Assembly (NCBI GenBank): GCA_907165135.1
Contig: OU015568.1
Location: forward strand, 2,046,001-2,110,000
DNA: 64,000 nt
Direction: 5' to 3'
DNA from: Oikopleura dioica
Taxonomy: Eukaryota > Animalia > Chordata
In this document: piece after piece, positions 3,528 to 57,878 of the stretch
Numbering within the stretch: position 1 is the first letter of the stretch
Layout of the letters: the number at the start of each line of letters is the position of its first letter
Notes under the pieces: generated by a model
The model's database searches: none
Told to the model about the DNA's origin: nothing
The model's input: the letters and a program-made list of their open reading frames with translations, nothing else
Translations under genes and position numbers: made by a program

Positions 3528-4319
3528 ACACTAGAATTTCTAATTTACTGCACAAAAGTTGAATAAAAACAAACAACAAGTTATTATTCGTCAAATTTAT
3601 TGAGAAATCTTTTTCTGGCAAAATCGACAAAGTTTATAATACAGTGTGCTTGTGGGTTTGTGTTCGTAAAGTTCGTTACTGTTACGCGATATTAAAGCAG
3701 TATTAAATTGAATAAGGGAATTGTTAGATAAGATTAAATTAAAGTAAATGTATAAACTTGGTGATAAAGACTTGGAGGAAGAATACTGATTGGAAAGTGA
3801 CTAGGAAAGAAACTAAAAATAAAGAACTTAACTTTTGTTTTTGTCTTTTTTGAATTGGCTTGTTTTGTTAGATCTGATAAGAATTGGTGATGATTTCGCA
3901 TTCAGTGAGTGTTTGGCGACTCGGAAAGGAGTCTAGGCAGTGGGGTTTTTTCATTGACTGCATTTTTGTTACAAAGGGTTGAATTCCAGAGGGCAAAAAT
4001 CCTCAGAGAAGTCCGAACTAAAGCAGGGCTATTTTGAAAAAGTGAACGAAAGTAAATAGCCCCAGCGCAGCGCTAGAAAAAAGATAAATTGAAGCATTCT
4101 TGTTCGTTTTTAAAACTGAAAATTGCAGTTATCAACAAAACGCTCCCCGATAACAGTATATACAGTTAAAATTTATAAAAGTTTAAGCAGGTGCGCAACT
4201 ATAACTTTAACTCTTTTGTTAGGATGTCTGCGTTAATACTTATTTTGCTTCTTTCGATATTTAAAGTGTTTCGAGGTGAAGGAAGTTGGTGAGAGTCATG
4301 TTAAAAGAAAGGACCACTG

Positions 4320-5991
4320 CTACTGGAAGGAAGACATGTGCGAGGGCAGATTGGGGTCCAGATGCGGTGCGGCGGAATGGGATGGGTACGATCCCAGAGA
4401 GGCAACAGAAGCAGGAGGGTTCAGGACCGAGCCGGGGCCGAACTCGCTGTAGGGGATCTTGTTGGGCGGCACCTGAAATATCAGTTAAGAATTGCAAGAA
4501 AAATTGGACGATCGGCGCCACTTTTACGGGACCGACAATCTTAAAGCATGTTTACTTGATTCCAGTACTCACCATATTATCACTCGAAGAAGTGCCGTTA
4601 GCAGGTTGATTAGGAATTTGCGAAAAGTCGGGTTGCGAGCCAGTTGGCGGCACTGGCTGACTCGGTAATTGCGATTGAGGCAGTCCCATCGAGCTTGGAT
4701 CGGCCCCGTCCGGCCTTCTCTTGAGGCAGGCTGCTTTTGGGTTGAGATTGCGGTCGCGCACTTGATGCTCCAGATTCATGATCACGTTTACTGCGTGTTG
4801 TAGAATAGATAGTTTTGTCTAAAAGCGGGTTGTTAGAGACAGCAGTTATTCTAAAAGGACAGAAGTCGGTCTAATTGGATTTTTCTTTCGAATAATTTTG
4901 ACGGGTAACAGAAGCCTATTAGAATAATCAAGAACGAGCAAGTACGGTCCTTCCCTGTGAAAACCCAGTAAGTAACTTAGAACAATCGGATAATAGGAAT
5001 TCGAACGGATCTGAAAGCGAGTTCCCAAAACTAACCCCGTAAAGCAAAAAAGGAACTTGATGATTACCTGAGGCTTATCATTTTTGAGATGCATTTGAGT
5101 CATCCTGCCGAGCTCCTTGAAGGCTTCGTTGATATCCCTCACGCGTAACCTTTCACGAGCATTATTGGCGACTCGTCTCTGCCTCTCACGCTCCTCTCGT
5201 TCGGCTGGCGTCAGCATTGACAGATCTTCTTCTTTTTCTTGCTTTGCTGGGAGCATGTGTCCGCCTTCAAAAGCTTTTTAAAAAAAATATCATCAATAAA
5301 GCAAAAAAGGACTTCAAAAACAAGACAATTTATCAGTCAGGTGACTATTCTCTTACCTTTTTCATAAGGACTAGGCCTGGATTTCTCCTTTTTCTTCTTC
5401 GTTTCCGCCTTCCCAAGATTTGGCGCTTCAGGAACCTGCCCTGGATAGCCGCCCATTTGCGCCCAAGGATTCGGATACCCTGAAAGAAAAACACAATCAA
5501 TAGACGGAAGAGGGGGTTTGAAATCCTACCAGGAAGTCCCATGCCAGGCGTTTGAGGTCGAACGCCCGGCAAGCCTCCTTGAAGCGCGTTCAGTCCAGCC
5601 AGGGGGTTGAAATCTTGACCCCATGGATATTGCATCCCGCCATTTTGATCCCCCGGTATACTCTATAAAAATCAATAACACTAAGAATATTAATTGACTA
5701 AAAGTAAACACTGGCTCAACATGAAGGAATAAGCTGGTCTTCCTGTGTAGTAACCTGAGTCAGGATCCTGAAAGAGCTTCAATGAAAAGCTGCTCGTTCA
5801 GGGGTTGATTCAGGTATTAACACAGGTTACCGAACCTAGATCGCGGTAAACGATGTCTACTCTCTTAGCTGTACCTGTGGCAAGTATGGATTTCCAGCAG
5901 CAAGTCCTGTTGCCCATTGATTCGCAGCTGCAGCGGCCGCGGCTGCCGCATGATTCGGATCATTCGCTGGATCTGCTGCGTGATCTGCCAT
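4320..5991 (-). CDS. TCF12: Class I bHLH E-protein (TCF3/TCF4/TCF12/daughterless family), about 6 exons
   Basis: [42 protein letters not shown] joins across GT-AG intron 4819-5074 to [35 protein letters not shown]. Upstream exons are traceable to [11 protein letters not shown] at 5991. Vertebrate paralogue assignment is not resolvable. Confidence 0.92.
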
Positions 5992-6277
5992 CTTTTGTTT
6001 CTCTCTTCAATTTTCAATCGTCTCTCAATCCAGAATTTCTCAGTTTCGATTCTTGTTTTTACACCGCGGGATGAAGAGGCGCTAAATATGTTGTTATTTA
6101 GAGCTGTTTGTACTAAATCTGCGTCAGGTGCAGAAATCCTGATGCGCCGCGGGATGCGCCCAAGTGTGAACAAATATGTAGGAAACTTCACGCGCCGCTG
6201 CTTTTCTTGAGCAGCATCCCCTTAATAAGGCGATAATTACCTTTCCAAGTGGAACTAGCAAAATGCTTCTTCTATTC

Positions 6278-6867
6278 AGACGAATTTCAATAAGGATTTC
6301 TGAGTGAAATTCTAACCCCCCTTTTTTATTGGCTCATTGGAAAGAGCGTAAAAAGTTATCCTCGATTCGCCCAAAAGGATGAAATTTCCCCGAAATGACG
6401 TCATGGCACGTGACCAAAGTTCCAAAAGTACCAAAACTTTGGACGCTCCGCATTTTCGATCCACTTTAGCTATCAGGGCGTGCGATAGTGGAAAATGATC
6501 GTTGCAACGAGAGCTATGCGTGCATCTAGGTTTAATCCCTTCAAAAATTTTTTCAACCCTTTTCATAATTTCATAATTTCAATTTTTTGAAAAAATTTTG
6601 GAGGGATGAAACCTAGATGCACGCATAGCTCTCGTTGCGACGATCATTTTCCACTATCGCACGCCCTGATAGCTAAAGTGGGTCGAAAATGCGGAGCGTC
6701 CAAAGTTTTGGTACTTTTGGAACTTTGGTCACGTGCCATGACGTCATTTCGGGGGAAATTTCATCCTTTTTTGGGCGAATCTAGGATAACTTTTTACGCT
6801 CTTTCCAATGAGCCAATAAAAAAGGGGGGTAAGAATTTCACTCAGAAATCCTTATTGAAATTCGTCT
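6278..6867. repeat. Long inverted repeat (about 280-bp arms, about 30-bp spacer), foldback/MITE-like
   Basis: 6278-6556 is the reverse complement of 6587-6867 with a few substitutions and indels. This produces the mirror ORFs 6312-6566(-) and 6606-6959(+). No clear TSD. Confidence 0.95.
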
Positions 6868-9634
6868 CAAATGTGGTTCTCTTGTTTGTTCTCTTCCTCG
6901 ATTCTAGTTGTTGGTTCTTTTCTTGTTTGTTGTTTCTCGATGACGATCAGCTTCTCTAACTACAGTGAGTTCTTACTGTAACGTTTTCTGAAAAAAGCAG
7001 CGGTTAAAATTGGTATTTACTATTTTGAAAAAGAAAGGCGCCTTTTTGTAAGACAGCGGGGCGCGTTGCGAACAGAGAGTGGAATATCTAGACACCTTGG
7101 CGCCAGAAAATCACCCTAAGGGTGAATCAAAGTGAATTTTCACGCACCACCACCCACGCAGGGATAGTGCTGGTGTGGTGCAGCAGCGCTTATAATAATG
7201 GGTGCGCACTCGCATTTCGTTTTTTTTTTCTGGTGGAGGTGTGAGTTGTGCGCCAGCACGCGTAGCGAAATTGGTGTTTGATGACTAGCAAATTACCACA
7301 CAGAATTTTCGGAAGGAATTGGTACACAGATGGTTATGGAATGCAAAGATAATAATTTAATTATTATTTAATCAAGGCAAAGTAACAGAAAGAAGTATAG
7401 AAACTAAACACTATTTTTACAAAAGAGTTGATCAAAAATGTATGCATGGGGCCATTTTTATATCAAATTGTTACGATTGATTTTGTAAGAAAAGAAGAAT
7501 TTTCACGATAATTGGATTATTGATGTTTAAAAAACCTTTAATTTGAAACTGTTTTCCGATAAGCAAGAATCTGACAGTGATAAAAAGACTGATTCAACAC
7601 TTATATAGACGTACTTATATTCTAGTAAAGGCAATTTTGCACGAATATCTTCGCGAGGATAAAATTATCGTGGCCGTCAAGTTTTCAAAATTATCCCGCG
7701 AATTACACCGCGCTTGTTTTTCTTGGAGCATCAAGAATAATAAATCATCTCTCGGCGCACGAGCCAGACCTTTCCTGGAATTTAATTCAAAATCTCCTCG
7801 CTCTTTTTCTTTCTCGAATTTCAAAACTTTCACGCTTTTTTGACGGGCTTTTGAATTTCTCTCAATTTAAATTTCCTTTCATAATTATTCATAACTCGCT
7901 ATGGACTTACACGCGAGCGGTCGTATATGAATAGAGCGGTAGATAGAGCGTAGAATCAATAAAAAATTAACTCGATTTACGTCTCCCCTTGTTTGAATAG
8001 CTCTACGAAGGGAGGTCGGCTTCGCCATCTGTCAAATTCAAATCTGTCAGTTTAACACTCAAACCGTCACTTTTTCGTTGTGAATTTGAGGAACCTGGCT
8101 TAGCTACAAGAAACTACCATTTTTAACATTCAAATTGACAGCCAAAAAATCATAAAATCTTGAAGATAAATTCCACAATGACTCATTGAGCTCATTGTCA
8201 ATGAGCTTGACGCCCTTAATTTTCAGTTTTTTTCTTGAAACTCAATTTTGAGAACTCAGAACTGGCAATTTAGAAATATGGCTCAAGTAAGTTTACCCGA
8301 GGAAAGTGTGTAAAAGAAGATAAAGTAAACATCGTTGATATTTCCGCTGGCACTTAGGGCCCGCGATACCCCTTTTTTTTATCAGCAGTCCTTGGGTCAA
8401 GTAGCCCGTGTTCACCCGTGTCAAATTTGCCCGATTTGCGGCCGGATGATTTTGGAAGCAAAAAATTACAGCTCTCCAAAATCGGCAAGATTAGCAGTCA
8501 TTCTTATCAAATCGGAGGGCTCTGGCACACTTGACCGCGTCGGAAAAAACATGATCATCGGCTATTAGCCTGTTTCCTGTGGCCATTCGTTCTCTTGGCC
8601 GGAAGCTGAGAAGCGTGAAATCGCCTAGCCTAAGGATCGTTCAACAGATATATATAATTTCCGGAAATTCAATTTTCACACGCGAAAGTCAAAATTTGAA
8701 GAATTACATAACCTTCACTTTTGATACTGAAAACAAAGTTATTCTTCGATGCAGCAGGTGCACGGGCCAGCTATTCTCTGTGAAAAAGAAAGCTTCGTTC
8801 TGGGGCCATTTGCTGAGTGGTGCTAAGCCAGCTTTCACTAGCAGGTTCGCCCAGCGAGATAGTGAAAATCTCCCTCGGCCTTAGTGTTACTCCTCATATT
8901 TATAACCCCAACTACCACTGTTTATCGCGGCTCGCCTACAGGAAGGGGTCATTATGAGACTACCTTTTTAGTCTGACCTCGGAACCTGACTCAGGTTTTT
9001 CGCACATGTTGTTGAACACAGGTTTTAGTCAAATGTTCGGGCAAAAGTAAACATTGTCAATCTTAATTTCATTATTCAAAAATTACTTGATTTTCAGCGA
9101 TAAAAAGGTTAAACATAAGATAATTAAATAAAAATGAATTAGAATAAAATTATGATAATAAAATGGTTGTTACAAGCATCTTCTTTGTTGAAGTCTTCTA
9201 CGAATTCCTTTTCTTTTCAGTAAATCTCTATTTTTCAAAAATGAGGGATTAGTTAAGTCGGATCTTCAAGAAAAAAGTTGCGTCCGGTTTTTGGGATTTT
9301 GAAAAATCGTCTCGGCGAGCGGGGAGATGCGCCCACCGACGCATTATGACGGCTGGGCCAATCAGCTGGCGTCTGGCGCAAGACACCCGTCGAGCGCGAA
9401 TCGATTCAGAAAATGCAGCTCTCAGCATTTTCACCCCACCGGGCGCGCTTGGCTTTGCCCCGGGGATGAGCCGCCTTCTGAGCCCTTTCTCTTTATTTCC
9501 TCGTTGATTTCAGCATCAAATATATTCAAAATTTGATGGGTAATTCAAATTTAATGCAGATAAGTAGTTTAAGACGGACATGAACAAAAAATTTGTTTAT
9601 TAAGAATTTCATGAAGAAAATAAGCAAGGAGTTC

Positions 9635-13767: not shown

Positions 13768-16700
13768 ATGGTGAAAGAGATTCTCTCCTATTTCCTTGCT
13801 TTTTCTTGGGTCGGCCTGGCGCGGGCCGATTTCCAATTCATCGACTTTTGGGAAGCTTCAGACGAGTACGCGGCAGAGATATTTTCGACGCTCAATGTGG
13901 GAAGTAAGAAGTTCGCGAGTTCCTTCCAAAATCGCTACAACCGAGCCAAATTGGCCGCCAAGTTCTACCAAGACAGCGGTCCCTGTGACTCTGGCTTCAC
14001 CAACCCATCGTATGAGCCCGTAGAGATGAAGATTTTCGACCCACGAGCGGCGATGAGTACCAACTTGCGGAATTTTGCCGACATGCTCGATTCTTGGATC
14101 AACTCGTACGCTTGTCTCGCCTCAAGAGACCGTGTTGCTGGTAAGCAGATCCGAGTTCCTCAGCGATCTGTTAAAGACATTCGCAAGATGTCAAAGCGAG
14201 ACGAATTTCAGGCACTGGTGGAATTTTTTAACAAAAATCTAATATCTGAAAGTGTTTTTGAATACAAAGAGATGTAAGAATAATGAAAAAATGTCAAAAA
14301 AATTAGTAAAGATACCTTATTTTTAGCGAATCGGATTTTTTCCGAAAACAATTTTTACGATAACTTATCACAGATGCGCATCATCGCTCCACATTTTTGG
14401 GGCCGCAAAGAGGGTTTTCCACTTTCCTAGTCGCACTGGGTGTTAAAAGTTTCATGCTTTCACCTGAATCGCTCTCGGAGTGAGAAACTGCTGCTATTTC
14501 TGTTTACGCAGGATTCAATATGAAATGAGGATATCTAGGGGAAATCACTAATAATTAAGCTTTTTCTAGCTTAGTAGGGTGGGACTATAATACAGATTTA
14601 GAAATTCTAAATTAGAATCCCCAAAAGCTAGGGGTCATTTTGACTATTGATAGTGGGGGGTCAACTCGTACCCTGAGGGCATTTAGGCACCTCTGAAGTC
14701 CCAAAATCTGGCCAACTTCGGAAATTTGAATTTTTGAACGCCCAGACCGCCCCTTTAGAGCCAGCAACTATGCTAGAATTGTAGCCCAGGCTCTGACGGT
14801 CATTTTGAGATATAGAAAAGTACTGAGACCCGGGGGTTCCTGAGGAGCTAGAGGCTCTTGAAGTTCGGGAACTCGACAAAAATTGAGTACTTTTTCACAA
14901 AAAGTACACAAAGTGTTTTGACCAAAGAGAATATACTGTCATGAATAGTTTTCACCTTAACTCAAGGAAGAGGAGTTTGCGTACCACATCTCACCAACAA
15001 CGATGGACTACGATGAAGCGTTGGCTTACTGCTATCTTCGCGGAAGTTGGCTTGCAGAACCAGCTGGTGATAAAAATCGCTTCGGTGCGATGAAGAGTGC
15101 ACTCGATAATCAGTGGTATTGGTTCCACGGTGACGATTCGTGCACTGCCGTTTCTGGTACAGGCGAAGTCGTCGATGAAAATTGCAACTCACAGTTTCCG
15201 GCGGTCTGCGAAACTGGCCAATTTACTGACAAGTGCTATCCTGCTGAATACAAGTGGTGTACTGCTTGGGGAGATCCTCATTTCACGACTTTCGACGGAG
15301 AGTTTCACCATCTCCAACCTCGATGCGAATATGTCATGGCCAAAGTCGATACTGATGAATACCCAAATGTGCCAAAATTTAATATCATCGGTGATTTTGC
15401 TCCTGTTGAGCCTGGTTCATCCCTGACTTACACACAAGGCTTCACGTTTGAATTTCCTGGGCAGGATCAATCGCCGGATGAGATTCCGAGATACGTCATT
15501 TCTGTTGAAAGAGATGACCGAAGAACATCTGGCATCCGAAGAAGCATTCTTGAAGATCGTCTGACCGGCGATTCATACGATTCATCTTTCGGAAACAATG
15601 ATTTCGACTTGTATATTTCAGATACGGTTGTTGTAATAATCACTTGGTTTGAGGTCTACGTAAAATATACAGCCTCTGCAGCATGGAACGGAAGAAATTA
15701 TAAACTTCAGATCAGGGTTCCTGATTGTTACGCTCATAATATCAATGGACTTTGCGGGAACTACGACGGTGAAAAATACGTTGAATTTACATCTGGAACC
15801 TCTGGTTCTCTCACCAGGGATCTCGACAATTGGAGGACAACTCAGGAAAATCTTTACGCATGGGCTGATCAGTTTCAAGTTCCTGACGAGCTTTGCCATC
15901 GTATCTTTGACCTTAACTGTGCGGTTGATATCAATCATGCTATCACTGCTTGCCAAGCACTTGATCCTGACAATTCCGAATCTATTTTCGAGCCCTGCAG
16001 TGGCGATAAAGGCGATGCGTTCTTCAGCTGCGTTACAGAAAAATGTGATAGATCAGACGAATGCCTAGCATTTGAATCGTTCGCGAAAGAGTGCATTAAT
16101 GCTTTGGAACCAGAAGAAAGAGAACCAATCTGCGACTGGGCGAATGAACTGGGATGTTCTACAGCTTGTGGGGCTAATGCTGTTTTCGAAGGATGTGCCG
16201 ACACGTGCGCTGCAACAAGAACATGCAGAAATCGTCATCAGAGTGATTTCGAGCGATGTGGTGCAAACACTGAGATCGATAGCATGTGCGTTTGCGAACC
16301 AGGATTCATACTCGATGGAGAGGACTGTATTCCTGAAGAAAACTGCGGTTGCACAGAAAATGGCTACTACTACGCCCTCGGTTCGGTGTTTCAAAAGCCA
16401 AATCGTTGGTATCCAGAAGAGAACTGCGAATGCACAACTTCAGGAATTGTCTGTACGCCGACCCCATGTGATCAAATGCAAAAAGGACACTGCAAGATTC
16501 ACAGCGACCCTTGGATAACAACTTTCGACAAGACATATTACGCATTCCATGGCAGCTGCAGATACAATCTCGTTAAGGCTGATGATACTGAAGATCGACC
16601 TGGGTTCTCTATTGATATCAGTAACAGAGGCAGTAGCAGATGGACAAGTAGAAGTGGATCACATTCTGGAACTGTTGTGGACCAAATCTGGCTAGAAGCA

Positions 16701-19700
16701 CATTCAAGCGACTACGTATTTGGAAACCAGAAAAGATACTTCTTTCATTTCAACAATAGAGATAATTCAGCAGATTATATGCAAACAGAACTAGATATCA
16801 CCCTGGTTGATCGTTTAACTGAGCGGACGTATTTTAATACTGATTTTTCAAATGATGATATCAGCTTAGAAATCACATTGAGCGATTATGCTCATACAGC
16901 TGGATTTAATCTTCAAGTGCACTCGAATGGTCTTCAGATCAAATATAAGTACTACTATTGGTGGATGGACGTATATGTTCCAAGTTGCTACAAGGAGTCA
17001 GTTTCAGGTCTCTGCGGTGATTGGGACGGCAACTCTGATTTTTCGTTGTCTCGAGACTACCAAAACGATCCAGACGAGTTTGGCGAACGATTCATGACTG
17101 CACGAATTTCTGACGAATGTACCCACGGTCGATTTTTCGAGCCTTGTGAAGATTTAGAGCCGGCGGAATTCACTGCAGCGATTGAGAGATGTGATTCTCT
17201 TGAAGATGGAACAGATCAAGCCGAGGTTTTCAGAACATGTGACTTCGTCAGCGATAAGCAGGGATACTTCGATCGTTGTCTCTGGAATAGCTGTCTCGAC
17301 CTTGCTTGTGGATCTATCCAGAATTTTGCTGAAGAATGTCTTCTCAGAAAAACGGAAGGCACTGCAGATTTCAATGAAATTTGTAACTGGCCTCAAGTGA
17401 CGAGCTGCACCGAAGAATGCTCAGGAGGACAAGTTTTCAAGGGATGTACAAATTCTTGCAAGGAAGCAAGAACATGCGATGATGTTGTCAACGGAGTCTC
17501 AGATGCTGATCGCTGTGGATCAGAACGTTCAATCTATCCTATGTGCGGTTGTCCTGATGGACAAGTCATGCACAATGGAGAGTGCATCAACGAAGAAGCT
17601 TGTCCTCGTGATTGCGTTTCAACAGGAACAAGCTATTGCACAGCATATGGTGATCCTCACTATAGAATGTTCGACGGCGATACCCACCATTTCCAGGGTG
17701 CTTGCAAATATAGGCTTGTTAAATCATCCGGCGACGACGAGTTTAGAAACATGCCAGCATTTAATATTGATGTTGATCAAAGACGATGCGGAGCCGATAG
17801 TAACGCAGTTTCCTGCGTACAAGGAATGACGTTTGAGTTCCCTGGAAAGAATCAATTCCGATCTGAGACTCCAAGATACTTTTTTACAGTTGATCGGTTC
17901 TCTTACATTTTTGAAGATCGCCATACTGGACAGTCTTACGAAAATGGTTTCGTTAATGATGACGTCACCTTTGAAAAAAGAGGGTCTACTGCTTATGTGC
18001 GAACATGGTTCGAGGCAGAAACTTCCTACACTCCCTATAGCAGGTGGGCAACGCTACGTGTGACTCTACCAGATTGCTACATGAACCACGTTGATGGTCT
18101 CTGTGGAAATTGGAATAATCAAACGTTCGATGAGTTCAATGAGAGTGCAGGTATATGGAAGAGTGAGGGTCAATGGCGAGTTCATCAAGAAGAGCTCGTG
18201 GAATGGGCAAACGATTTTGCGGAGCCTGATCCAAGATGCCGAGAAATTCATGATTTTGAATGCGATGACATCGATGAGGTAACAGATCTCTGCGCTGAAC
18301 TTGACAAAAACATTCCTGGTGGCGTTTTCCATGAATGCACCGCTCCTCGAGATGCTGCTTATATGTCCTGTATGATTGACACCTGCATCTCACGTGATGC
18401 ACGATGCAGTACGCTTCAAAATTATGCAAGAGAATGCTTGAACACGATTCCCTTTCACCTACGACCAAATATCTGCTCATGGGCATCTGACACAGGTTGT
18501 GAGCTTGAATGCGGAGACAACAGTAGCTTCCTTGGCTGCGCAAACACATGTGATGCCCAGCGAACATGCAGAAACCGTCATTTGTCAAGCGAAGAACGAT
18601 GTGGATCATCCGTGGACAATATTGAAAGCATGTGCGCTTGTGATCCTGGCTATATTCTTGACGACGGAGGATGCGTCTTGGAAGAAAACTGCGGATGCAC
18701 TTGGGACTACAATAATCAATACTACCCACAAGGCACAACCTTTTCAAACAACGATGAAACTTGTGAATGCACAACTTCAGGAGTTGTGTGCACGCCAATT
18801 CCATGTGATCGAATGCAGAGGGGACATTGTGAAGTTATGAGCGATCCTTGGATTACAACTTTCGACAATACATATTATGCATTCCATGGCAGCTGCAGAT
18901 ACAATCTCGTTAAGGCTGATGATACTGAAGATCGAGCTGGGTTTTCTATTGATATCAGTAACAGAGGCAGTAGCAGATGGACAGATAGAAGTGGATCACA
19001 CTCTGGAACTGTTGTGGACCAAATCTGGCTAGAAGCACATTCTAGCGACTACGTATTTGGAAACCAGAAGAGATACTCCTTTCATTTCAACAATAGAGAT
19101 AACTCAGCGAATTACATGCAAACAGCACTAGATATCACCCTGGTAGATCGTTTAACTGGGCAGACTTATTTCAACACCGATTTTTCAAATGATGATATCA
19201 GCTTAAAAATAACGGTGAGCAATAATGCTCATACAGCCGGATTCAATCTCCAAGTGCACTCGAATGGTCTTGAAATCAACTATAAATATTACTATTGGTG
19301 GATGGATGTATATATTTCAAGATGCTACAAGGATTCAGTTTCTGGCCTCTGCGGTGATTGGGACGGCAATTCTGATATTTTGATGTCTCGAGACTACGAA
19401 AACGATCCAGACGAATTCGGCGAACGATTCATGACTGCACGAATTTCTGACGAATGTACCCACGGTCGATTTTTCGAGCCTTGTGAAGATTTAGAGCCGG
19501 CGGAATTCACTGCAGCTATTGAGAGATGTGATTCTCTTGAAGATGGAACAGATCAAGCCGATGTGTTCAGAACATGTGACTTCGTCAGCGATAAGCAGGG
19601 ATACTACGATCGTTGTCTCTGGAATAGCTGTCTTGACCTTGCTTGTGGATCTATCCAGAATTTTGCTGAAGAATGTCTTCTCAGAAAAACGGAAGGCACT

Positions 19701-22700
19701 GCAGATTTTAATGAAATTTGTAACTGGCCCCAAGTGACAAGCTGCACTGAAGAATGCTCAGGAGGACAAGTTTTCAAGGGATGCACAAATTCTTGTAAGG
19801 AAGAGAGAACATGCGATGATGTTGTCAACGGAATCTCAGATGTTGATCGCTGTGGATCGGAACGTTCTATCTATCCTATGTGCGGTTGTCCTGATGGACA
19901 AGTCATGCATAATGGAGAATGCATCAACGAAGAGGCTTGTCCTCGTGATTGTGTTTCAACAGGAACAAGCTATTGCACAGCATATGGTGATCCTCACTAC
20001 AGGATGTTCGACGGCGATACCCACCATTTCCAGGGTGCTTGCAAATATAGGCTTGTTAAATCATCCGGCGACGACGAGTTTAGAAACATGCCAGCATTTA
20101 ATATTGATGTTGATCAAAGACGATGCGGAGATGATAGTAACGCAGTTTCCTGCGTACAAGGAATGACGTTTGAGTTCCCGGGAAGGAACCAACTCCGATC
20201 TGAGACCCCAAGATATTTTTTTACAGTTGATGGTTCCTCTTTCCTTTTTGAAGATCGCCAAACAGGACAGTCTTACGAAAATGGTTTCGTTAATGATGAC
20301 GTCACCTTTGAAAAAAGAGGGTCTACTGCTTATGTACGAACATGGTTCGAGGCAGAAACTTCCTACACTCCCTATAGCAGGTGGGCAACGCTACGTGTGA
20401 CTCTTCCGGATTGCTACATGAACCACGTTGATGGTCTCTGTGGAAATTGGAATAATCAATCGTTCGATGAGTTCAATGAGAGTGCAGGTATATGGAAGAG
20501 TGAGGGTCAATGGCGAGTTCATCAAGAAGAGCTCGTTGAATGGGCAAACGATTTTGCGGAGCCTGATCCAAGATGCCGAGAAATTCATGATTTTGAATGC
20601 GATGACATCGATGAGGTAACAGATCTCTGCGCAGAACTTGACAAGAACATTCCTGGTGGCGTTTTCCATGAATGTACCGCTCCTCGAGATGCTGCTTATA
20701 TGTCCTGCATGATTGACACCTGCATCTCACGTGATGCACGATGCAATACGCTTCAAAATTATGCAAGAGAATGCTTGAACACGATTCCGTCTCACCTTCG
20801 ACCAAATATCTGCTCATGGGCATCTGACACAGGTTGTGAGCGTGAATGTGGAGACAACAGCAGTTTCCTTGGCTGCGCAAACACATGTGATGCCCAGCGA
20901 ACGTGCAGAAACCGTCATTTGTCAAGCGAAGAACGATGTGGATCATCCGTTGACAATATTGAAAGCATGTGCGCTTGTAATCCTGGCTATATTCTTGACG
21001 ACGGAGGATGCGTCTTGGAAGAAAACTGCGGATGCACTTGGGACTACAACAATCAGTACTACCCACAAGGCAGAACCTTCTCAAATAACGATGAAACTTG
21101 TGAATGCACAACTTCAGGAGTTGTGTGCACGCCAATTCCATGTGATCGAATGCAGAAGGGACATTGTGAAGTTATGAGCGATCCTTGGATAACAACTTTC
21201 GACGATACATATTATGCTTTCCATGGCAGCTGCAGATACAATCTCGTTAAGGCTGATGATACTGAAGATCGACCTGGTTTTTCTATTGATATCAGTAACA
21301 GAGGCAGTAGCAGATGGACAGATAGAAGTGGATCACATTCTGGAACTGTTGTGGACCAAATCTGGCTAGAAGCACATTCAAGCGACTACGTATTTGGAAA
21401 CCAGAAGAGATACTCCTTTCATTTCAACAATAGAGATAACTCAGCGAATTACATGCAAACAGCACTAGACATCACCCTGGTAGATCGTTTAACTGGGCAG
21501 ACGTACTTCAACACCGATTTTTCAAATGATGATATCAGCTTAAAAATAACGGTGAGCAATAATGCTCATACAGCCGGATTCAATCTCCAAGTGCACTCGA
21601 ATGGTCTTGAAATCAACTATAAATATTACTATTGGTGGATGGATGTATATATTTCAAGTTGCTACAAGGATTCAGTTTCTGGCCTCTGCGGTGATTGGGA
21701 CGGCAATTCTGATATTTTGATGTCTCGAGATTACCAAAACGATCCAGACGAATTCGGCGAACGATTCATGACTGCACGAATTTCTGACGAATGTACCCAC
21801 GGTCGATTTTTCGAGCCTTGTGAAGATTTAGAGCCGGCGGAATTCACTGCAGCAATTGAGCGATGCGATTCTCTTGAAGATGGAACAGATCAAGCCGAGG
21901 TTTTCAGAACATGTGACTTCGTCAGCGATAAGCAGGGATACTACGATCGCTGTCTCTGGAATAGCTGTCTCGACCTTGCTTGTGGATCTATCCAGAATTT
22001 TGCTGAAGAATGTCTTCTCAGAAAAACGGAAGGCACTGCAGATTTTAATGAAATTTGTAACTGGCCACAAGTGACAAGTTGCACTGAAGAGTGTTCAGGA
22101 GGACAGATTTTCAAGGGATGCACAAATTCTTGCAAGGAAGAGAGAACATGCGATGATGTTGTCAACGGAATCTCAGATGCTGATCGCTGTGGATCAGAAC
22201 GTTCTATCTATCCTATGTGCGGTTGTCCTGATGGACAAGTCATGCATAATGGAGAATGCATCAACGAAGAGTCTTGTCCTCGTGATTGCGTTTCGACGGG
22301 AACTGGCTCTTGCAAAGCATCTGGTGATCCTCACTACACAATGTTCGACGGCGACACCCACCATTTCCAGGGCTCATGCAAATACAGCTTCGTAAAATCA
22401 TCCGGGGACGAAGACTTTAGAAACATGCCAGCATTTAATATTGATGTTGATCAAAGACGATGCGGAGAAGACAGTCGGGCGGTTTCCTGTATTTATGGAA
22501 TGACATTCGAATTTCCTGGAGAGAACCAGCATCGATCTGAAACTCCAAGATATTTTTTGACAATTGATGGTTTTTCTTTTGTATTCGAAGATCGCCAAAC
22601 TGGGGAGTCTTACGAAAATGGCTTTTCTAATGATGATGTAACATTTGAAAAAATTGGTCGTTCTGCAAAAGTTAGAACATGGTTTGAAGCAGAAACTCTC

Positions 22701-25700
22701 TACACCCCATATCATCAATCCTACTGGGGAATATATGCGACTCTTGAAGTGACACTACCAAATTGCTATATGAATCACGTGGATGGTCTCTGCGGCAATT
22801 GGAATGGAGAACAATTCGATCAATTCCACCGAATTGGAGGTGATTGGCTTGGAGCTTCATGGCGCGCTCATCAAGAGGAGCTTGTTGAATGGGCAAATGA
22901 CTTCGCTGAGCCTGATCCAAGATGTCGGGAAGTTCACGATTTCGAGTGCGATGATATCGAAGAAGTCACAGATCTATGCCATGAGCTAGATAAAAACATT
23001 CCTGGTGGTGTTTTCCATGAGTGCACAGCTCCAAAGGATGCTGCTTACCTGTCTTGTCTCATTGACACATGCATCTCACGTGATGCACGATGCAATACCC
23101 TTCAAAATTATGCAAGAGAATGCTTGAACACGATTCCATCTCACCTTCGACCAAATATCTGCTCATGGGCATCTGACACGGGCTGTGAACTTGAATGCGG
23201 AGACAACAGTAGCTTCCTTGGCTGCGCAAACACATGTGATGCCCAGCGAACGTGCAGAAACCGTCATTTGTCAAGCGAAGAACGATGTGGATCATCCGTT
23301 GGCAATATTGAAAGCATGTGCGCTTGTGATCCTGGCTATATTCTTGACGACGGAGGATGCGTCTTGGAAGAAAACTGCGGATGCACTTGGGACTTCAATA
23401 ATCAGTACTACCCACAAGGCAGGACCTTCTCAAACAACGATGAGACTTGTGAATGCACAGCTGACGGCATAGTCTGTGCACCGATTCCTTGCGAAAACCG
23501 ACCAACAGCGTATTGCAGATCCCATAATGATCCGTTCATTTACACCTTTGATGAGTACGAGTATTTCTTCCATGGCATCTGTCGATACAACCTTGCAAGC
23601 GCCCCTGATACAGTAGAATTGCCTGGATTCAATGTCGATTCCAAAAACAGAAAAACATTCTACGGTGCATCGTCTGGTACCGTTACTGATCAGCTTTGGT
23701 TCGATTTCCATGGAGCTGACTACGTTTTTGGCGATTCAAAACGATACTCTCTAACAATTAAAAATTTGGATACATCAATTTACTGGACAAATGCTCATTT
23801 CGAAATCACCCTTACTGACCATCGTACAGGAGAAAATATTATCGATAGAATTTCTTCTTCGACTCGAAATTCTTTCACGTCGTCTGACTATGAAATTACT
23901 GTGAAACAGACGCGTTGGAATTCGAATATTTTTTATGACACTGTCGAAATTCGAATAGCTAATGGAGTTTCAGTTGAGTTCAGCACTAAATCTTTCTCTG
24001 CTTATGTCCGTGTCAACAGCTGCTTCAAGAACATAATGACCGGTCTTTGCGGAAATTACAACGATAATAACTCCGATGAACGTCTTTTGTCAACTGAATA
24101 TGACGACGATAGTAACGCCGTAGGAGAACGATTCCGAACTGACAGCGATGAAACCTGCTCACACGGAGAACTTCTCAAGCCCTGCGAAGATCTTCTCGAA
24201 GAATCTGATCAAGCTGCTGTCGATGCTGCTGAAGATCGATGTGACATTGTGAACCCAAGGCCGAACGATTATTTAAACAGAGGCTTTTTCAATGGATGCG
24301 AGTTCCTTGGAAGTAGAATGCCAACTTATGAAGCTTGCCTCTTCCATAGTTGTCTGGATCCTGAAATGCACTGCGGAATCATTGAAGACTATGCATCTCA
24401 ATGCCTGGCAAGAAAAGTTGCTGGGACAGCTGACTACCAAAGAATTTGCGAGTGGGCTTCTGTCACTGGCTGTGCTCAAGAATGTCCAGCATTAGAGGTA
24501 ATGATAGTCACTTTAGGCTTTTTAGAAGTTAAAAAAATATGATTTGAAATCATTGATTTCGTTAATATGTTTTATTTCAGAGCGGTCTTGGAGAAAGCCC
24601 AATAAGAGCAGAAGATCCTTACAAGATTAGTCTCGAGGTCTTCTGCACTGGTGAACGAGCTGATGCAATGACAGGAATGGCCTCGTATTTGCGACAAGAT
24701 GGAAGCCAAAAGAATGGTTACTACTTCGGTGTTGGTGGAGTCAACAATAAACTACAAATTTTCGTCTGGATGTAAGTCATATTTGAAATTCATTATTTAA
24801 CACAAAATCAAGGGAGAATCCAGATTTCGAAAAAGAAACTGGTTGGGAGCTTCTTACAGACTTCGGCGATGATTGGTGGGAGTTAACACGAAACCCAACA
24901 TACCTCTTCCTTTGCGAAGCAGACTCCTGGAATTCCATTGTTTTGACACAAGAATACGAGCAATCTCAGAAAAAGTGGGTGAAAACGCTGAACATCAATG
25001 GCGTTGACCGATACAGAATAACAACCGATCTTCCAAATCAAGGCACACTTACTGGTTACAGTACCATTCTCGGTCGAGAAGAAAGAAGCGATCTTATGAG
25101 AAACCTGAAGATCGAGAGGCTCTCAAAGAAAGAAATCACCGCTCATGTTTTCAAGGGCTGTACAAACGCATGCTTCGAGCAGCAGACATGCGAAGATGTA
25201 GCCAGAGGAATCAGCAGAGAACAGCGTTGCGCTGCTACTGCCAACAGAGTAGAAGGCATGTGTGGATGTCCTGATGGGTTCTTGTTTGAAGATGGAGTCT
25301 GCGTTGCGGAAAGCTCATGCGGATGCATCAACAACGACGGAAACTATGTTGAGCTTGGCACAGTTGAAGGAGGATGCACTTGTACTTCGACTGGATACGA
25401 ATGCGAACCAGAACCATGCCCATGTGAAGAGTTTGATTCATGCATCGACTTTATTTGCGAAGATGCCCAGTCATTTTTCGTTCCCGAGGATGGAATAATC
25501 GGAGAATTCACTGCCACTCGAAACTTTGAGCTTAGCTATGAATTCAACTGTGGAGCTATGGAAGCAAATTCTACTTACGTTGGGCCCCATATTTATGCTA
25601 CAGGGGAGTTCCCAAGATCATTCAATGAAGGAGATGATCCGACAAAGCCTACCGAGGAGAAGAGAAAAAAGAAAAGAAAAGCAAGGTTCGCTGGATCACC

Positions 25701-40548: not shown

Positions 40549-40823
40549 TGTACCGCGCTTTCTCTATCAATTCCTGCTCTTCAAGTATATCTGGTCTTTT
40601 TGTCAGAATAATCTGCCTGTATAAACGCCTGCGTTTCCATGGTGTCTCCTTCTGCAAATAGAATAAATATCAGCATCAAGCATTTCGAATTCATTATTTG
40701 ATAAAGTCCTTATCAAAACAGTCTCCTTGTTTAGACTCTGTTAATAACTGATGCTTGATTGAGCTACTGTAACCTTAAAAAGTCATGATTATTTATTGAG
40801 ATCATCGATCAAAGAGGTTTCTT

Positions 40824-43800
40824 TCAAACAGATACGAAAAACTTTCTATCATAGCACCAGTAGGCGTAAATTGTCCAAAGAAAAGGTCCCATGAATGCCA
40901 TTAGCATTTCTTCGCTGTGGCTCTGGTACTTAGGGTTCCAGGTGAAGGGGATACGATAGCCAGCGATGATGTGAAGCAGATAGATGAGGATTGAGTTCAT
41001 TCCGACAAAATAGCATGGCGCTCCGTCCCACCAGTCTCTAACATCTAGAATAAGCAGATGAAGCAGTGTTTTCTATGACAAAATTACCAATAATGAAGTA
41101 AAGGAAGGCCAAAAGCAGGAATGCCATGCTAGAAAGCACGAAAACAAACGAAACACTCCACAAATTCTTATTTATCGGAACAATCGCTTCAGCAATTTTT
41201 CCATACCTTAAGAAAATAAAAAAATTTTTCGATAAAAATGAACCTCTCGTCATATTCAAGACCAATTGTAGCGAGCAGCATCCCCGCGATTCCGTAGACA
41301 AAAGCGAGTCCAAGAAGATGAATAATAATCTTTTTCGGCTCCTTGAATATATCGAAGCATTTTCCTGCCTGGAGACCAAGATACACCATGAAAATAGAAG
41401 TCAATGTCCCAAGAATGCCTTCGGGATCGTAAGGAATGCCATTCGGCTCGTCATCGAAGCGGTAGTAAACGTTATAAGCAGTCGGCCAGTTGTATAAGTG
41501 CTTTTCCCCGAGAAGTTTTCTGTCGATGTACCCAGCTGCGCCGCCAATGCAATCATAGTATTTGCCATTCTCGGACAAACCTCCAGGACCAGTATACCCA
41601 GTTGGACAGTTTGGGACAGGAAGCAAATAGGTGACGGAAAGAAAGGTGCCGAGAATGCACCAGTTGATCAGATGTTCGGGGAAATAGAGCTTTGAGCAGG
41701 TAAAAGAAGTTTTTTTCAAATAGTTTTTTGATAAAAAATGAAATCAAAATTTCTTTAACCCATCCCTTGAATTGTCCAAAGGTAGTTGTTGGTTCCTCAT
41801 CTGGATGAACAATCACCAATAAATGAATAATCGCAACGACGAAGTACGAGAACCCAATCCTCTGCAAAACCCCCGGAAATCGAAAGTACTCCCAGGACTC
41901 ATTCCCGCCAATGGTGATCATTCCCAACCCAATGAGTTTGACAGATCGGACGAGAATTTCATAGCTGATTTCTGTCTTGGAAACGCCTCGTTTAATCCTT
42001 GATAGAAGCGCGATTCGGATCGAGACGCCGGACATGAACAAAAACCAAGGCATGACCAAGTCAGCGAGAGTGAGTCCGTTCCAGGGTACATGTTCCATGA
42101 ACCAGTATTCTTAGGCTTACCGGACTTAATTTCGGCCCATTTTTCTAACTTAGTTGGAGGGTCATAAGATACAGTTTTAGAAAGCCCAGAAACTGGGCTT
42201 TCATTTGGGCACCATATAAAGGGGTTTGGGTTATGCCCGCAAGGCAATCCATGGGACCTGAAAGTTCTAAACCGCCTTCGAAAAATAGTTTTAAGTGTTC
42301 TAGTGCCAATTTTGGAACTTTAGGTCCCATGAATTGGCTTGCGGGCATGATCCAGACCCCTTATATGGTGCCCAAATGAAAGCCCAGTTTCTGGGCTTCT
42401 TAAAACTGTATCATATGACCCTCCAACTAAGTTAGAAAAATGGGCCGAAATTTAGTCCGGTAAGCCTAAGTATTCTCCACCGCCATAGTTGACGAATATC
42501 ATGATGATCAACGACAACCCTCTCAAAGTATCCAAAGACTTGTACCGCTTCTTTTTCGCTGGCGCGGGAGCTGGTGTAGGCGCGACTTTTTCTTCCTCAG
42601 TTTTTTCATTGTTTTCATTATCGGCATATGGATTTTGAGCATCTTCACTGATTTCTTCGGCAGAAGTTGCTCTTCGTCGACGGATGTTGTACCAAATGAG
42701 ATAGATTGAAAATGGGATGAAGACAACAAGGACTTTTTTTGTCTTTTTATTTTCAGTGACTCGAGTACTCTGTTATTCACCTCTATCAGATATTTATAGC
42801 GCTTGAGTTGTGGGCTTACAGCACTAAATGTAAAGTGCGAAATTCATACTTGAATCGTTGTTCTGTAATAAATCATAAATTGGCTTCCAAGAGCGCACCA
42901 AGTATAAAAAGATGATCGCGTCAAATTTTGATATCCAACTCGAGATGAAATTAGTACTTCTCTATTTCCTAGCGGTTACTTTTTCAGTTCGACTGATCGG
43001 GCGGCCAAATGCTTATGTTTTGAACCTGTTCTACAACGAGTGCATTCAAGCGTCAAACCATCACCAACAGATCCCGCTTGATGATTTTGAAACATTGGAA
43101 TCGATCGAGAACTTTTGTAGGTCTCTCTTCTTGAATTACAAGTTGAGAAAGTAAAGCATTTATCTGCCAAAAAAAATATATTTTTAAAAACCTTACTGCC
43201 ATGATTCCTGAATATTATGCTCGTTGAACTTCAACGGAAGCCATGAATAACAGCCGTTTTCAGCATTTGTCTTGAGAGGTTCGGACACTTGACTAGACTG
43301 ACATTCCTACATTATGTAGGGGCTCAAAAGTGATCATCGAGTATAAAATGAGAGTTGACCGTCGTGTCGGTATCAGTTTCAATCGCAAAATGAAACCTCT
43401 ACTTGCCTTTTTGTGCTTTTTTCCTTTTGTCCTTTCGATGGGACTCAAAGATCAACCAAGTGTTTACGAAATGAGCTCGTTTTACAACGATTGCATTCGA
43501 AGAGCAAAACACCAGCAACAAATCTCACTTGAAGATTTTACTCTGGAAGACATCGAGAATCTTTGTGGCGCTGTTTTCGCGACATATTTTAATGACAACC
43601 CAAAAAGGTTCATTATTTTCCAAAAATAATTATTATTGGTTTCTTTAGCCTGCCGGAACTTATGGACGACTTTGACAACACATTTCATCATGAACGCGAT
43701 TCGACCATTGATTTTGGATTCATGGGAAATTTTCTCAAATAAAGATATCAAAAACATAAAATTATAAAGACATTCCTAGAGTGTAAACTGGATAAAGATA

Positions 43801-44226
43801 GACGGCCGGGCTTCTTCCCTCTTTCCATTGCCGGATCTTCTCCTTCCCATCTTTTTCGAAAACGTACCAACCACCTTCTTTGAAGCTAATGAACCCTGTC
43901 TTGAAATCTGGTTTCGTTTCGTCATCGTATTCCATATCCACCACGCTTTCGTCGGCCATAGCGAATCTCACAGGCCAGCGCATGTCCATTTCTGCCTCCA
44001 TTGGAGCAGTTAAATCCGTTCCGTTTTCGTCAGAAGGATCGAACTTTAGCTCCGACCAGAGGCATTTGTAGCACTCTCGTTGGTGGTAGAAAATTTTTTT
44101 GCCCTCCAAATCAGCTTTTTCGATAAAGATCCAAGACGTGTCCATAAGTACTCTTCTTCCATTAAGAGTTTCTTTGAACGCCAAAGCATTGGGAAGAGAG
44201 ATGAAAAATATGATAAAATTCAGCAT
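40824..44226 (-). CDS. HGSNAT: Heparan-alpha-glucosaminide N-acetyltransferase (coding exon interrupted by a MITE)
   Basis: Luminal ECYKCLWSEL, RYKSLDTLRGLSLIIMIFVNYGGGEY, WNGLTLADLVMPWFLFMSG, RFPGVLQRI, PNCPTGYTGPGG, DPEGILGTLTS. Ends RKFFVSV-stop. Confidence 0.95.
42112..42468. mobile_element. hAT-like MITE (357 bp) with 8-bp TSD inside an HGSNAT coding exon
   Basis: AGTATTCT (42104-42111) | TAGGCTTACCGG ... CCGGTAAGCCTA | AGTATTCT (42469-42476). The arms are near-perfect inverted repeats over most of the element. Confidence 0.95.
42945..43154 (+). CDS. Small secreted 2-Cys protein A, nested antisense in an HGSNAT intron
   Basis: TATAAAA at 42903, signal MKLVLLYFLAVTFS, then FYNECIQ..QQIPLDDFETLESIENFC. 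Clear paralogue of the next gene. A short second exon is possible. Confidence 0.7.
   Translation: MKLVLLYFLAVTFSVRLIGRPNAYVLNLFYNECIQASNHHQQIPLDDFETLESIENFCRSLFLNYKLRK
43390..43742 (+). CDS. Small secreted 2-Cys protein B, nested antisense in an HGSNAT intron (2 exons)
   Basis: TATAAAA near 43341, signal MKPLLAFLCFFPFVLS, then FYNDCIR..QQISLEDFTLEDIENLC. A GT-AG intron leads to SLPELMDDFD...GNFLK-stop with overlapping AATAAA. Confidence 0.75.
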
Positions 44227-45605
44227 GGTTGAACTTCTCTACTTGAAATTCCGTAAACATGGGAGTCGTGTTTGATGACATCGGCAAATATTGACTTGAG
44301 AACTGCAAGTGGTATTTTCTGTATTTATTGAATTTCAAGCATTAGCAGTTAAGAATTGTTAGGCTTTCGAATGAGATTTTATCATCTTAAAATATCTTCA
44401 GCGATTTTGTAAATAAGGGTCTCATTATGTTAATCAAGCTCCTTTATGAACAGCTGTGGACTTTTTTTTTTCATAGAATGATGCTTCTGATTGATTGAAA
44501 AATTCCCGAAAAGTGAAAAAAGCCACAACTTCGTGGTTGGAAACCTTGCGCCGAAAACCACCACCAGCTGCGGCGCCCCCTCTTTGTTCCTTTTGAAACG
44601 AAGCAGTTTTTTTGCTACTCCACGTTTGCCAAAATTAAAAGATCCTCAAAATAGTCCTCGAGATCGTAATTACGAAATTGAACGGTAATCGCTTCCGTGT
44701 TCGCAAAAATAATTGGCGCCACTGAATCCAATCAACGCGGCACCAGGCGCCGGGTCACAAATCAGCCCCGAGCACAATCAGCTCCACCAACTCAGCACTA
44801 AATTTAACCAAAAAATATAACTACACCTTGACTTTGCGCCACCGCAAAATCAACCGCTAGCGGAAAAACATCATCATAATCAGTTAACTTTAGCTATTCA
44901 CGACGATTTTTTATTGAAAATAGAAAAATATGCAAAATCCAATTACTATACAAAAAAAGTAAAAAGGAAAAATTTTTATCTGAAAGGCGGAACACTAAAT
45001 TATAAAGTAATATTTAATTAAAAAATAATTTTTTAACATAAAATATTAAATTATCAAAAAAAAATAATTTGCTAAAATCGGAAAGCTTGGTTCAATTTTA
45101 ACTAAATAAAATATAATAAATAATATAATAATCATATAATAATATAAATTTTAAAAGGATGATCAGTTAAAGAATTGATCAAGAGAAAATTGCTTTTGAT
45201 TTTGAATAATTGATGATATTTTTTTTTGAAAAATGAAATTTTTCACCGAAGCAAACCACTTATGCAAATCACAAAATCTGCTGAGTGGTAAAGTCAAGTT
45301 CAAGTCTCAAGGGCGCCGCAGGGTGCCCAGCTTCTTATCGGTGTGCCGGGTGCTCCGGTCTGTGTTTTGCGTTGTATTTTCGAGTGGAAGTTATTCGGTG
45401 GAGGCACCACAACGACACGCACCACCACCGCGGAAAAACGAGCCAGTTGTCAGTCAGGTAGAGAAAGATTCACCGCAAAGCCCAGAAACACGACGAGATA
45501 GAAAACGCGGATAGAAATTAAATCACTTAACTCCGGTTTTCAGCACAGAAACAGTCACAGCCAGAGAATACTCAGAACACGAAGAGACTTTCACACTTGT
45601 AGATT

Positions 45606-56187: not shown

Positions 56188-57878
56188 ATGAAGACTATCG
56201 CGATTTTCGGAACAATTTCTCAAGCAGCCCTTGTGCGAAACTATGCTCATTACGACGATGAGACCTGGAGAGCACCCATCTACGAGAGTAAGTAGCGACC
56301 ATAAGAGATGTTTTTGAAGGATTTTTCGGTAAATTTCTCTTTAAATTATCATTGACTTCTATTATTAATCATATACTGTATATGATATGAATCGTTAATT
56401 GACATCAGAAGATAAATGAGTTCGTTTTTATTGCAGGCTTAACGTTTTCGGAACAGAAATTCCATCATCAGAGCCGGTTGCTTGAAAACTTGACGATCTT
56501 TTAGCAAAGGAGAAACTGACCTTTTCTTGTAGAAGAGTGAACTGATCAATATTCCGAATAATAACTTGATCCCTAGCCACATTCTAGAGAAAATAATGTA
56601 ACTCGAACTATTTTTATAATCTCAGAGGCTCCAATTGCCTTCAAAACTATAATATAAATAATAATAATAATAATATAAAAATAGTTCGGGTTACATTATT
56701 TTCTCTAGAATGTGGCTAGGGATCAAGTTATTATTCGGAATATTGATCAGTTCACTCTTCTACAAGAAAAGGTCAGTTTCTCCTTTGCTAAAAGATCGTC
56801 AAGTTTTCAAGCAACCGGCTCTGATGATGGAATTTCTGTTCCGAAAACGTTAAGCCTGCAATAAAAACGAACTCATGTATATGATATACATACGTTTCTG
56901 AACTTTCATCGCTTATCTAATTACAAGTCTAAGATATTTCCGTACTTATTCAATCATTCAATAATTAATTTAAAATTTAGGCTTCCTGCCCGACCCCTGG
57001 TCTGACAAACCCTGCTACGACTACATCCATTCCGTCCACCCATCAAAATGGCTGAACGACGGACTCTTCCTTCCCGATTGCACCGCTGATGGTCTCTACC
57101 ACCCTACTCAATGCAACTTCCAGAACCATCGGTAAACTAAACATCCTACAAAAGAAAGTAATCATCGAATTCAGCTGCTGGTGCGTCGAACCCGACGGTC
57201 AAAAAATCGCGAATTCCGAGATTCCCCTCTGGCGGGTTATTCGCGAGCCGGAAACGGCAAAATGCATCCATCGCTTCAGGTAGAAAAACTGTTCAAAAAC
57301 CTCTTCATAATCTTTATTTAGGGAATTCCTGAACGGAAAGGGTCGTTTCCCAGTGAACAACATCATCGAAAAATCAACAACGACAACCGAAGAGCCAGCA
57401 ACTTCAACTTTCAATCCCAAGTGGGCCGAAACGACTTATTCGGTGCAGACAGAAGCTACTACTGCTCTGACAGATTCATTTACATCTACTGAAGCTGGTG
57501 AGTCATTCTCTTTTACCTTATTATTCAACTCTTCTTTTAGCCACAATTATTATGGAGGACTCCGATCCCGTAACTACTCCTGCCGAATCAACCACATTTT
57601 CAAACACCGCTGTTCCGTCGCTCCCAACCACCACTGAAGAATTCCTCCAGATCGAGCTCTTCCCAATTCTGAACCTTGAATCTTCGGAGACTGAAGATAG
57701 CCAGCTCGTGACTCTGACTGGCCCTGGAATCTTCGCAGCGCCGAAAGAAGAGGATTTTGTCAAATTCTCGAGCTCCAACTTTGCCGTCGCGATGATGAAA
57801 GCACCTGAGGAGGAGATTCTCCTGATCGAAGAAGGATCTGGCGCGACTGAGGTTCATCTCGAAGGCTCTGGAGAATAA
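56188..57878 (+). CDS. Secreted thyroglobulin type-1 domain protein with Thr/Glu-rich tail
   Basis: MKTIAIFG..; PC...FLPDCTADGLYHPTQC..|CWCVEPDG (Tg1 QC/CWCV signature); the acidic tail ends in an EGSGE motif (EEGSG, a possible GAG attachment site). Confidence 0.8.
56416..56876. repeat. Near-perfect palindrome (about 200-bp arms, about 55-bp spacer with (AAT)n) in intron 1 of the Tg1 gene
   Basis: 56416-56618 is the reverse complement of about 56674-56876. I saw only one mismatch by eye. Confidence 0.95.

Follow-up and report, generated by a model that had tools for sequence, protein, structure and literature searches.

Does a transposable element that has landed in the coding sequence of a chordate gene behave as a newborn intron, or does it simply break the gene? 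The question is raised by a 357-bp palindromic MITE that interrupts exon 2 of HGSNAT (heparan-alpha-glucosaminide N-acetyltransferase, a lysosomal enzyme) in the OKI2018_I69 assembly of Oikopleura dioica. All positions refer to the window, by which we mean the whole stretch of 64,000 nucleotides of OU015568.1 that was analysed. Compared over 33 kb and over 20 kb, the window and OU015568.1 (assembly GCA_907165135.1) differ by 0 mismatches, and position 1 corresponds to 2,046,001 of the record. The first-pass annotation of this DNA, made from the letters alone, had proposed either an intron gain caught in the act by an Introner-like mechanism or a null allele.

Structure and Termini of the Element

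The element is an almost full-length palindrome, with inverted arms of 120 nt at 94% followed by a further 53 nt at 81%. Its terminal repeats agree at 12/12 positions, and the two copies of the 8-bp target-site duplication that flank it are identical (8/8). The features are as follows.

42112-42468 (OU015568.1:2,088,112-2,088,468, PAR scaffold of OKI2018_I69): MITE, 357 bp, palindromic
42112-42123, plus strand: left terminal inverted repeat, TAGGCTTACCGG
42457-42468, minus strand: right terminal inverted repeat, TAGGCTTACCGG
42104-42111: target-site duplication copy AGTATTCT, downstream in the gene sense, with the sense AG at 42111-42110
42469-42476: target-site duplication copy AGTATTCT, upstream in the gene sense

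For a 12-mer terminal-repeat pair, 0.06 chance matches are expected in the window. A scan for 8-bp direct repeats around terminal repeats of at least 11/12 returned two places, the HGSNAT site and an artefact lying within another palindrome, and the same scan on shuffled sequences returned 0 in each of 10. The generic features of a MITE are all present, namely a length below 800 bp, terminal repeats, a duplication and the lack of a transposase ORF, the longest ORF being 67 aa. As sense-strand RNA, the element is predicted to fold into a single hairpin of ~170 bp (MFE -276.3 kcal/mol, z -29.4). A known RNA family in this hairpin was considered and rejected, the Rfam matches being sub-threshold and miRNA-like only (mir-559 with 31.5 bits vs a gathering score of 95).

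The terminal motif of hAT elements is 5'-YARNG and their target consensus is nTnnnnAn. The MITE shares the 8-bp duplication of this group. Its terminus TAGGC agrees with YARNG at the first four positions, with C instead of G at the fifth, and the duplication (AGAATACT / AGTATTCT) departs from nTnnnnAn, since on either strand its second position is G and its seventh is C. The element may be called hAT-like only, by its 8-bp duplication and TAG terminus, as it departs from both the YARNG and the nTnnnnAn consensus. It is best explained as a copy of a non-autonomous cut-and-paste DNA transposon, hairpin-shaped, that recently entered HGSNAT exon 2.

The Interrupted HGSNAT Gene

The host gene is an HGSNAT orthologue on the minus strand, and the MITE lies within the NYGGGEYW motif of exon 2. 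The boundaries of the five-exon model below were derived from frame and homology, and those of intron 1 from frame and the conserved acceptor of a sister allele.

43776-44226, minus strand: exon 1, signal peptide and luminal N-terminus
42733-43775, minus strand: intron 1, 1043 nt, GA-AG (CTAG/GAATGT ... AAAAAAG/TCC), with a purine-rich 3' end
41760-42732, minus strand: whole of exon 2, MITE-interrupted
42477-42732, minus strand: upstream part of exon 2 (exon 2a), first transmembrane helix, linker and RYKSLDTLRG...FVNYGG
41760-42103, minus strand: downstream part of exon 2, WFMEHVPWNGLTLADLV...
41244-41689, minus strand: exon 3
41088-41206, minus strand: exon 4
40827-41044, minus strand: exon 5, then the stop codon (exons 3-5 span 40824-41689)
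42452-42454, minus strand: first in-frame stop, TAA, if the MITE is retained; the product ends ...NYGGGEYLGLPD at 243 aa

The three short introns are 37-70 nt long and of the GT-AG class, with a poor donor consensus past the GT (GTTAAA, GTTCAT and GTAATT). It is noted that intron 1 contains two small antisense ORFs, 42945-43154 and 43390-43629; in look-ups, neither was on record as a called gene.

When the 365 nt of the element plus one duplication are taken out, the reading ...IFVNYGGGEYWFMEHVPWNG... is restored within a 614-aa open frame that has one terminal stop. The hallmark motifs of the family are all kept (RxKSLDxxRG, FVNYGGG, PWNGLTxADLVxPWF, PGVLQR, GPGG, GGAAGYIDR, DPEGILG, PINKNLWSxSF and GMNSI), and the restored product aligns over its whole length with full-length homologues. 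Within the HGSNAT / DUF1624-DUF5009 acyltransferase family, its 614 aa compare with 568-601 aa in cnidarian and other homologues. Among 98 family representatives (33-55% identity), the length of the VN-x-GGG-x-Y stretch is constant, and each of its three glycines is at least 90% conserved. The uninterrupted sister allele P0002 scores 29.6 bits against Pfam HGSNAT_cat (cut-off 22) and 26.9 bits against DUF5009 (cut-off 25); the window piece, the downstream part of exon 2, on its own gives 23.8 bits for DUF5009, slightly below the cut-off of 25. Neither a word-index search nor a full HMMER search returned an annotated full-length O. dioica orthologue, the matches being metagenomic exon ORFs only.

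With the element retained, the frame would read ...NYGGGEY-LGLPD and end after 243 residues, with the loss of the whole transmembrane catalytic part. What the first-pass annotation had said of the insertion itself stands: a MITE with a target-site duplication in a conserved HGSNAT coding exon, 365 added nucleotides bringing a frameshift and stops when left unspliced (the TAA at 42454-42452), and a gene otherwise intact, as judged by homology and the 614-aa frame.

In contrast to the rest of the family, the gene is MITE-interrupted on the present haplotype and annotated in GenBank as two genes. The HGSNAT locus (40824-44226, OU015568.1:2,086,824-2,090,226) is modelled as two fragments because the MITE insertion breaks the gene: a 154-aa gene, which is the exon 1 ORF, and a 337-aa gene, which begins at the ATG at 42098, six bases beyond the duplication. 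Exon 2a (42732-42477) and the MITE are in no GenBank model. The 337-aa model is 37 residues shorter than the five-exon model counted from the same ATG, and at least one annotated intron therefore differs from ours. The split shows that gene prediction failed to span the GA-AG intron and the MITE; it is silent on splicing. Elsewhere in the window, a single ORF of 3179 codons (15003-24542) is part of OKI2018_I69.PAR.g8984 (3984 aa; VWD, TIL and C8 domains), which is 56% identical to oikosin 30c and has a 79% paralogue on chr1.

An Empty Site in the Same Lineage

The insertion is independently proven by X1, a DNA run with the same species label, since one of its contigs (867 nt) joins 42103 to 42469 and skips exactly 365 nt. 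At the empty-site junction 8 letters fit either side, and one AGTATTCT copy is kept. The ancestral reading that the first-pass annotation had obtained by removing the element plus one duplication is thus carried by a real allele. The depth of the empty-site contig is 152, compared to 143-155 for neighbouring single-copy contigs. X1 can be assigned to the window's lineage because further contigs match the window with 0 differences, whereas a Tara Oceans relative is only ~80% identical in HGSNAT exon 2. The sister lineage to which this relative belongs is represented by six metagenomic alleles (87% identical at the amino-acid level), and FVNYGGGEYWFMEHVAWNG is uninterrupted in 6/6 of them. The insertion is recent and polymorphic in the Okinawa lineage: the MITE is on the haplotype picked for the OKI2018_I69 reference and is missing from other chromosomes of that lineage.

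Two haplotypes are seen in X1 at 43976-44273, with 0 and 15 differences and depths of 68 and 90, and at 41964-43195 only a diverged MITE-free haplotype is seen, at a depth of 152. X1 therefore comes either from one heterozygous animal or from pooled animals among which the MITE haplotype is rare, if it occurs at all. SNPs of X1 within the exon include those at 42512, 42525 and 42563.

Other Copies of the Element

Word depth over the MITE in X1 is 3600-6900 vs ~150 in the flanks, which suggests a family of ~25-45 copies. By the same depth, the family is multicopy and probably active. The termini of the MITE are confirmed by X1 contigs of other copies, since contigs with unrelated flanks lose their match at 42112 and 42468. 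Seven X1 contigs of other copies stay alike to 42473, five bases beyond the terminal repeat, and three end at 42468; the likeness out to 42473 could be due to AT-rich flanks, to a target preference or to a subfamily with a longer terminus. Within the 64-kb window there is no second copy, and nothing was found when metagenomes were scanned with a 32-nt core of the MITE or with both terminal repeats separated by a gap of 318-348 nt.

Two further hairpin elements were seen in the window. A 596-bp two-tier element at 6275-6870, with arms of 102 nt (97%) and 171 nt (96%), lies between annotated genes, and its sequence is not related to that of the HGSNAT MITE. At 56412-56880, a 469-bp element with 207-nt arms that are 99% complementary lies in AT-rich DNA, and no clear duplication was found around it. 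Inside it, the motif CAGGCTTAACG is similar to the terminus of the HGSNAT MITE, TAGGCTTACCG.

Candidate Splice Sites

Removal of the MITE from the transcript by splicing would draw on a cluster of donors at the upstream end of the element in the gene sense.

42464-42483, minus strand: in-frame donor cluster, first intron bases GC at 42483, GT at 42480, GA at 42477, AA at 42474 and GC at 42465

The GC, GT and GA donors at 42483, 42480 and 42477 fall in the GGC-GGT-GGA run, and the GC donor at 42465 sits inside the terminal repeat. The only nearby in-frame acceptor is CCTAAG/ (AG at 42111-42110), whose AG comes from the target site and not from the MITE. The first-pass annotation had described this acceptor and the in-frame GA, GT and AA donors as they are found here, and two GC-AG options are now added (-3 aa and +3 aa). 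Its suggestion of an Introner-like mechanism is not supported, since an element that takes its acceptor AG from the target site is no adapted introner. Use of an in-frame G*-AG pair would alter the protein by -3, -2, -1 or +3 residues, and such pairs are expected by chance beside a GGN-GGN-GGN run. Every G*-AG product breaks an invariant feature, because the 98 family representatives lack length variation at VN-x-GGG-x-Y.

Exact removal of the element plus one duplication can be placed in nine registers, which begin and end AG..TA, GA..AA, AA..AG, AT..GA, TA..AA, AC..AT, CT..TA, TT..AC and TA..CT. By direct enumeration, none of the nine is G*-AG, and the sole AG-ending register starts with AA. 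The MITE plus its duplication does not provide a donor and an acceptor for precise, frame-keeping removal. Two other modes of splicing were considered and rejected. U12-type AT-AC splicing of the MITE is ruled out by the register enumeration. For AG-AC or AG-AT splicing of the Fritillaria type, the exon sequence that precedes the element is indeed ...GAATACT, but AG..AC and AG..AT are not among the exact registers.

The sense-strand ends of the MITE read TTAG/GC at the 5' end and CCG/GTAAGC at the 3' end, acceptor-like and then donor-like. Judged by these motifs, the order of the ends is the reverse of what an intron needs and the opposite of an introner. In O. dioica, GA donors have the context AG/GAA (PMC7072748), with which CTAG/GAATGT of intron 1 agrees; the GA donor at the MITE, TG/GAG, is unlike it. 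The acceptor at the MITE lies within the predicted stem of ~170 bp and has no pyrimidine tract, and intron 1 also appears to be without one. Non-GT introns make up 11-12% in O. dioica (PMC8008620).

RNA reads were sought on 40700-44300 at 90% likeness in three oligo-dT runs of 2026 (X11-X13, which maybe come from a diverged cryptic lineage), with 0 reads found. The 18 older RNA runs listed contained about none of the words of the HGSNAT gene. That 0 reads fall over 3.6 kb may be most simply explained by an origin of X11-X13 in another cryptic lineage.

Null Allele or Newborn Intron

The MITE copy is probably a recent null or hypomorphic insertion allele, more than a harmless new intron. The sequence leans to this reading because no exact register is G*-AG, the length of the motif is invariant in the 98 representatives, and the context of the GA donor is off. 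Most transcripts of the MITE allele would retain the element, and their product would stop at 243 residues, short of the transmembrane catalytic domain. Any splicing at the weak G*-AG sites nearby would yield a protein whose NYGGG motif is altered. The allele would in either case be a null or a strong hypomorph, kept as a recessive polymorphism and not as an established intron. Counting against the null reading is intron 1 itself, apparently a GA-AG intron with a purine-rich 3' end, so that weak sites may suffice in this gene.

The main rival is a nascent transposon-born intron, which we regard as possible, if unlikely. A permissive U2 spliceosome would join the target-site AG (42111-42110) to the GT (42480), the GA (42477) or a GC donor, giving an in-frame mRNA that lacks 1-3 glycines or carries 3 extra residues, with an enzyme that works well enough to make the allele almost neutral. 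It is in keeping with this proposal that the GT, GA and GC donors are all in frame with one acceptor, and that the predicted hairpin brings donor and acceptor side by side. Non-canonical G*-AG introns are moreover common in O. dioica (PMC8008620, PMC7072748), the real HGSNAT introns manage with a poor donor consensus past the GT, and in the larvacean Fritillaria borealis the U2 spliceosome excises MITE-derived introns (Henriet 2019, summarised in PMC11282704). However, the products would change a motif that does not vary in length in 98 homologues, the TG/GAG context is unlike AG/GAA (PMC7072748), the acceptor is buried in the ~170-bp stem with no pyrimidine tract, and the in-frame G*-AG pairs are due by chance beside GGN-GGN-GGN. 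The MITE allele is also absent among the X1 contigs listed, where the empty site is at full single-copy depth.

A perfect NYGGGEYW would be regained only if the element were removed exactly at its duplication, either by an AA-AG splice (42474...42110) or by structure-guided excision at the base of the hairpin. We consider this very improbable. We know of no structure-guided pathway of intron excision in animals, and the intron classes reported for O. dioica are G*-AG, with AA-AG not among them. The AA-AG register is nevertheless the sole exact one that ends in AG, and its exon side ends AG/; the stem sets the duplication copies adjacent to each other, with pairing at 6/8 positions, and structure-dependent excision of MITE-like introns has been described in euglenids (PMC11282704). 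A further point against this explanation is that the resulting empty-site mRNA would be indistinguishable from transcripts of the empty allele. Least probable of all is a non-germline origin, whether the insertion was created by the assembly or arose, somatically or in culture, in the one male that was sequenced. The assembly was made from one individual with its haplotypes merged (PMC8008620), and among the X1 contigs listed none links the HGSNAT flank to the MITE. De Bruijn contigs break at repeats, however, so a missing bridging contig says little, and the perfect 8-bp duplication with intact terminal repeats is the signature of real transposition. On a wider view, a segregating newborn chordate intron, in which a hairpin MITE is removed via weak G*-AG sites or by stem-aided exact excision, and which would be one of many such exon insertions in the Okinawa genome, seems to us unlikely.

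With a null or hypomorphic allele as the preferred reading, the locus as yet presents an ordinary and well-documented case of transposon insertion polymorphism, in which a conserved gene of a reference assembly is disrupted. If carriers splice the MITE out, its presence or absence at a site whose empty state is known would become a natural experiment on the birth of an animal intron. It would also test whether the relaxed splice rules of larvaceans serve to render MITE insertions harmless, an idea put forward for Fritillaria borealis. With a cultured species, a small locus and a known ancestral state, such a test would be cheap.

Comparison with Known Systems

In the Ds and Ds1 alleles of the maize genes wx and adh1, studied by Wessler and colleagues, exon insertions are reportedly spliced out imprecisely and in part. 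The HGSNAT insertion is similar in that a non-autonomous hAT-type element with an 8-bp duplication lies in a coding exon, and several donor and acceptor pairs in or near its termini could remove most of the element, with leaky and slightly altered products. In contrast to maize, the present host is a chordate whose spliceosome is permissive for G*-AG introns; the element forms a nearly perfect hairpin, and its splicing is hypothetical.

Introners of Micromonas, Aureococcus and dinoflagellates (Huff 2016; Gozashti 2022, PMC9860276) likewise consist of DNA transposons in exons, with one splice site taken from the duplicated target. These have one good splice site, placed at the correct end, and their removal is precise, whereas the HGSNAT MITE has none there and its exact removal would be AA-AG. 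PMC9860276 makes no mention of Oikopleura or tunicates, and a literature search found no paper on MITE-born introns in O. dioica.

A further close precedent is Fritillaria borealis, like O. dioica a larvacean without a U12 spliceosome. According to PMC11282704 and PMC13326754, which summarise Henriet 2019, its MITE introns are fixed and run into the thousands. Most of them are AG-AC or AG-AT after an exonic TAC, and they have been tied to duplicated U2AF subunits. The likeness extends to terminal repeats, duplications and lineage-specific positions in coding sequence. The Oikopleura copy differs in being polymorphic and in having no AG-AC or AG-AT register, and the splicing reported for O. dioica is G*-AG. 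If the newborn-intron reading were true, transposon-driven intron gain would be ongoing in Oikopleura as it once was in Fritillaria.
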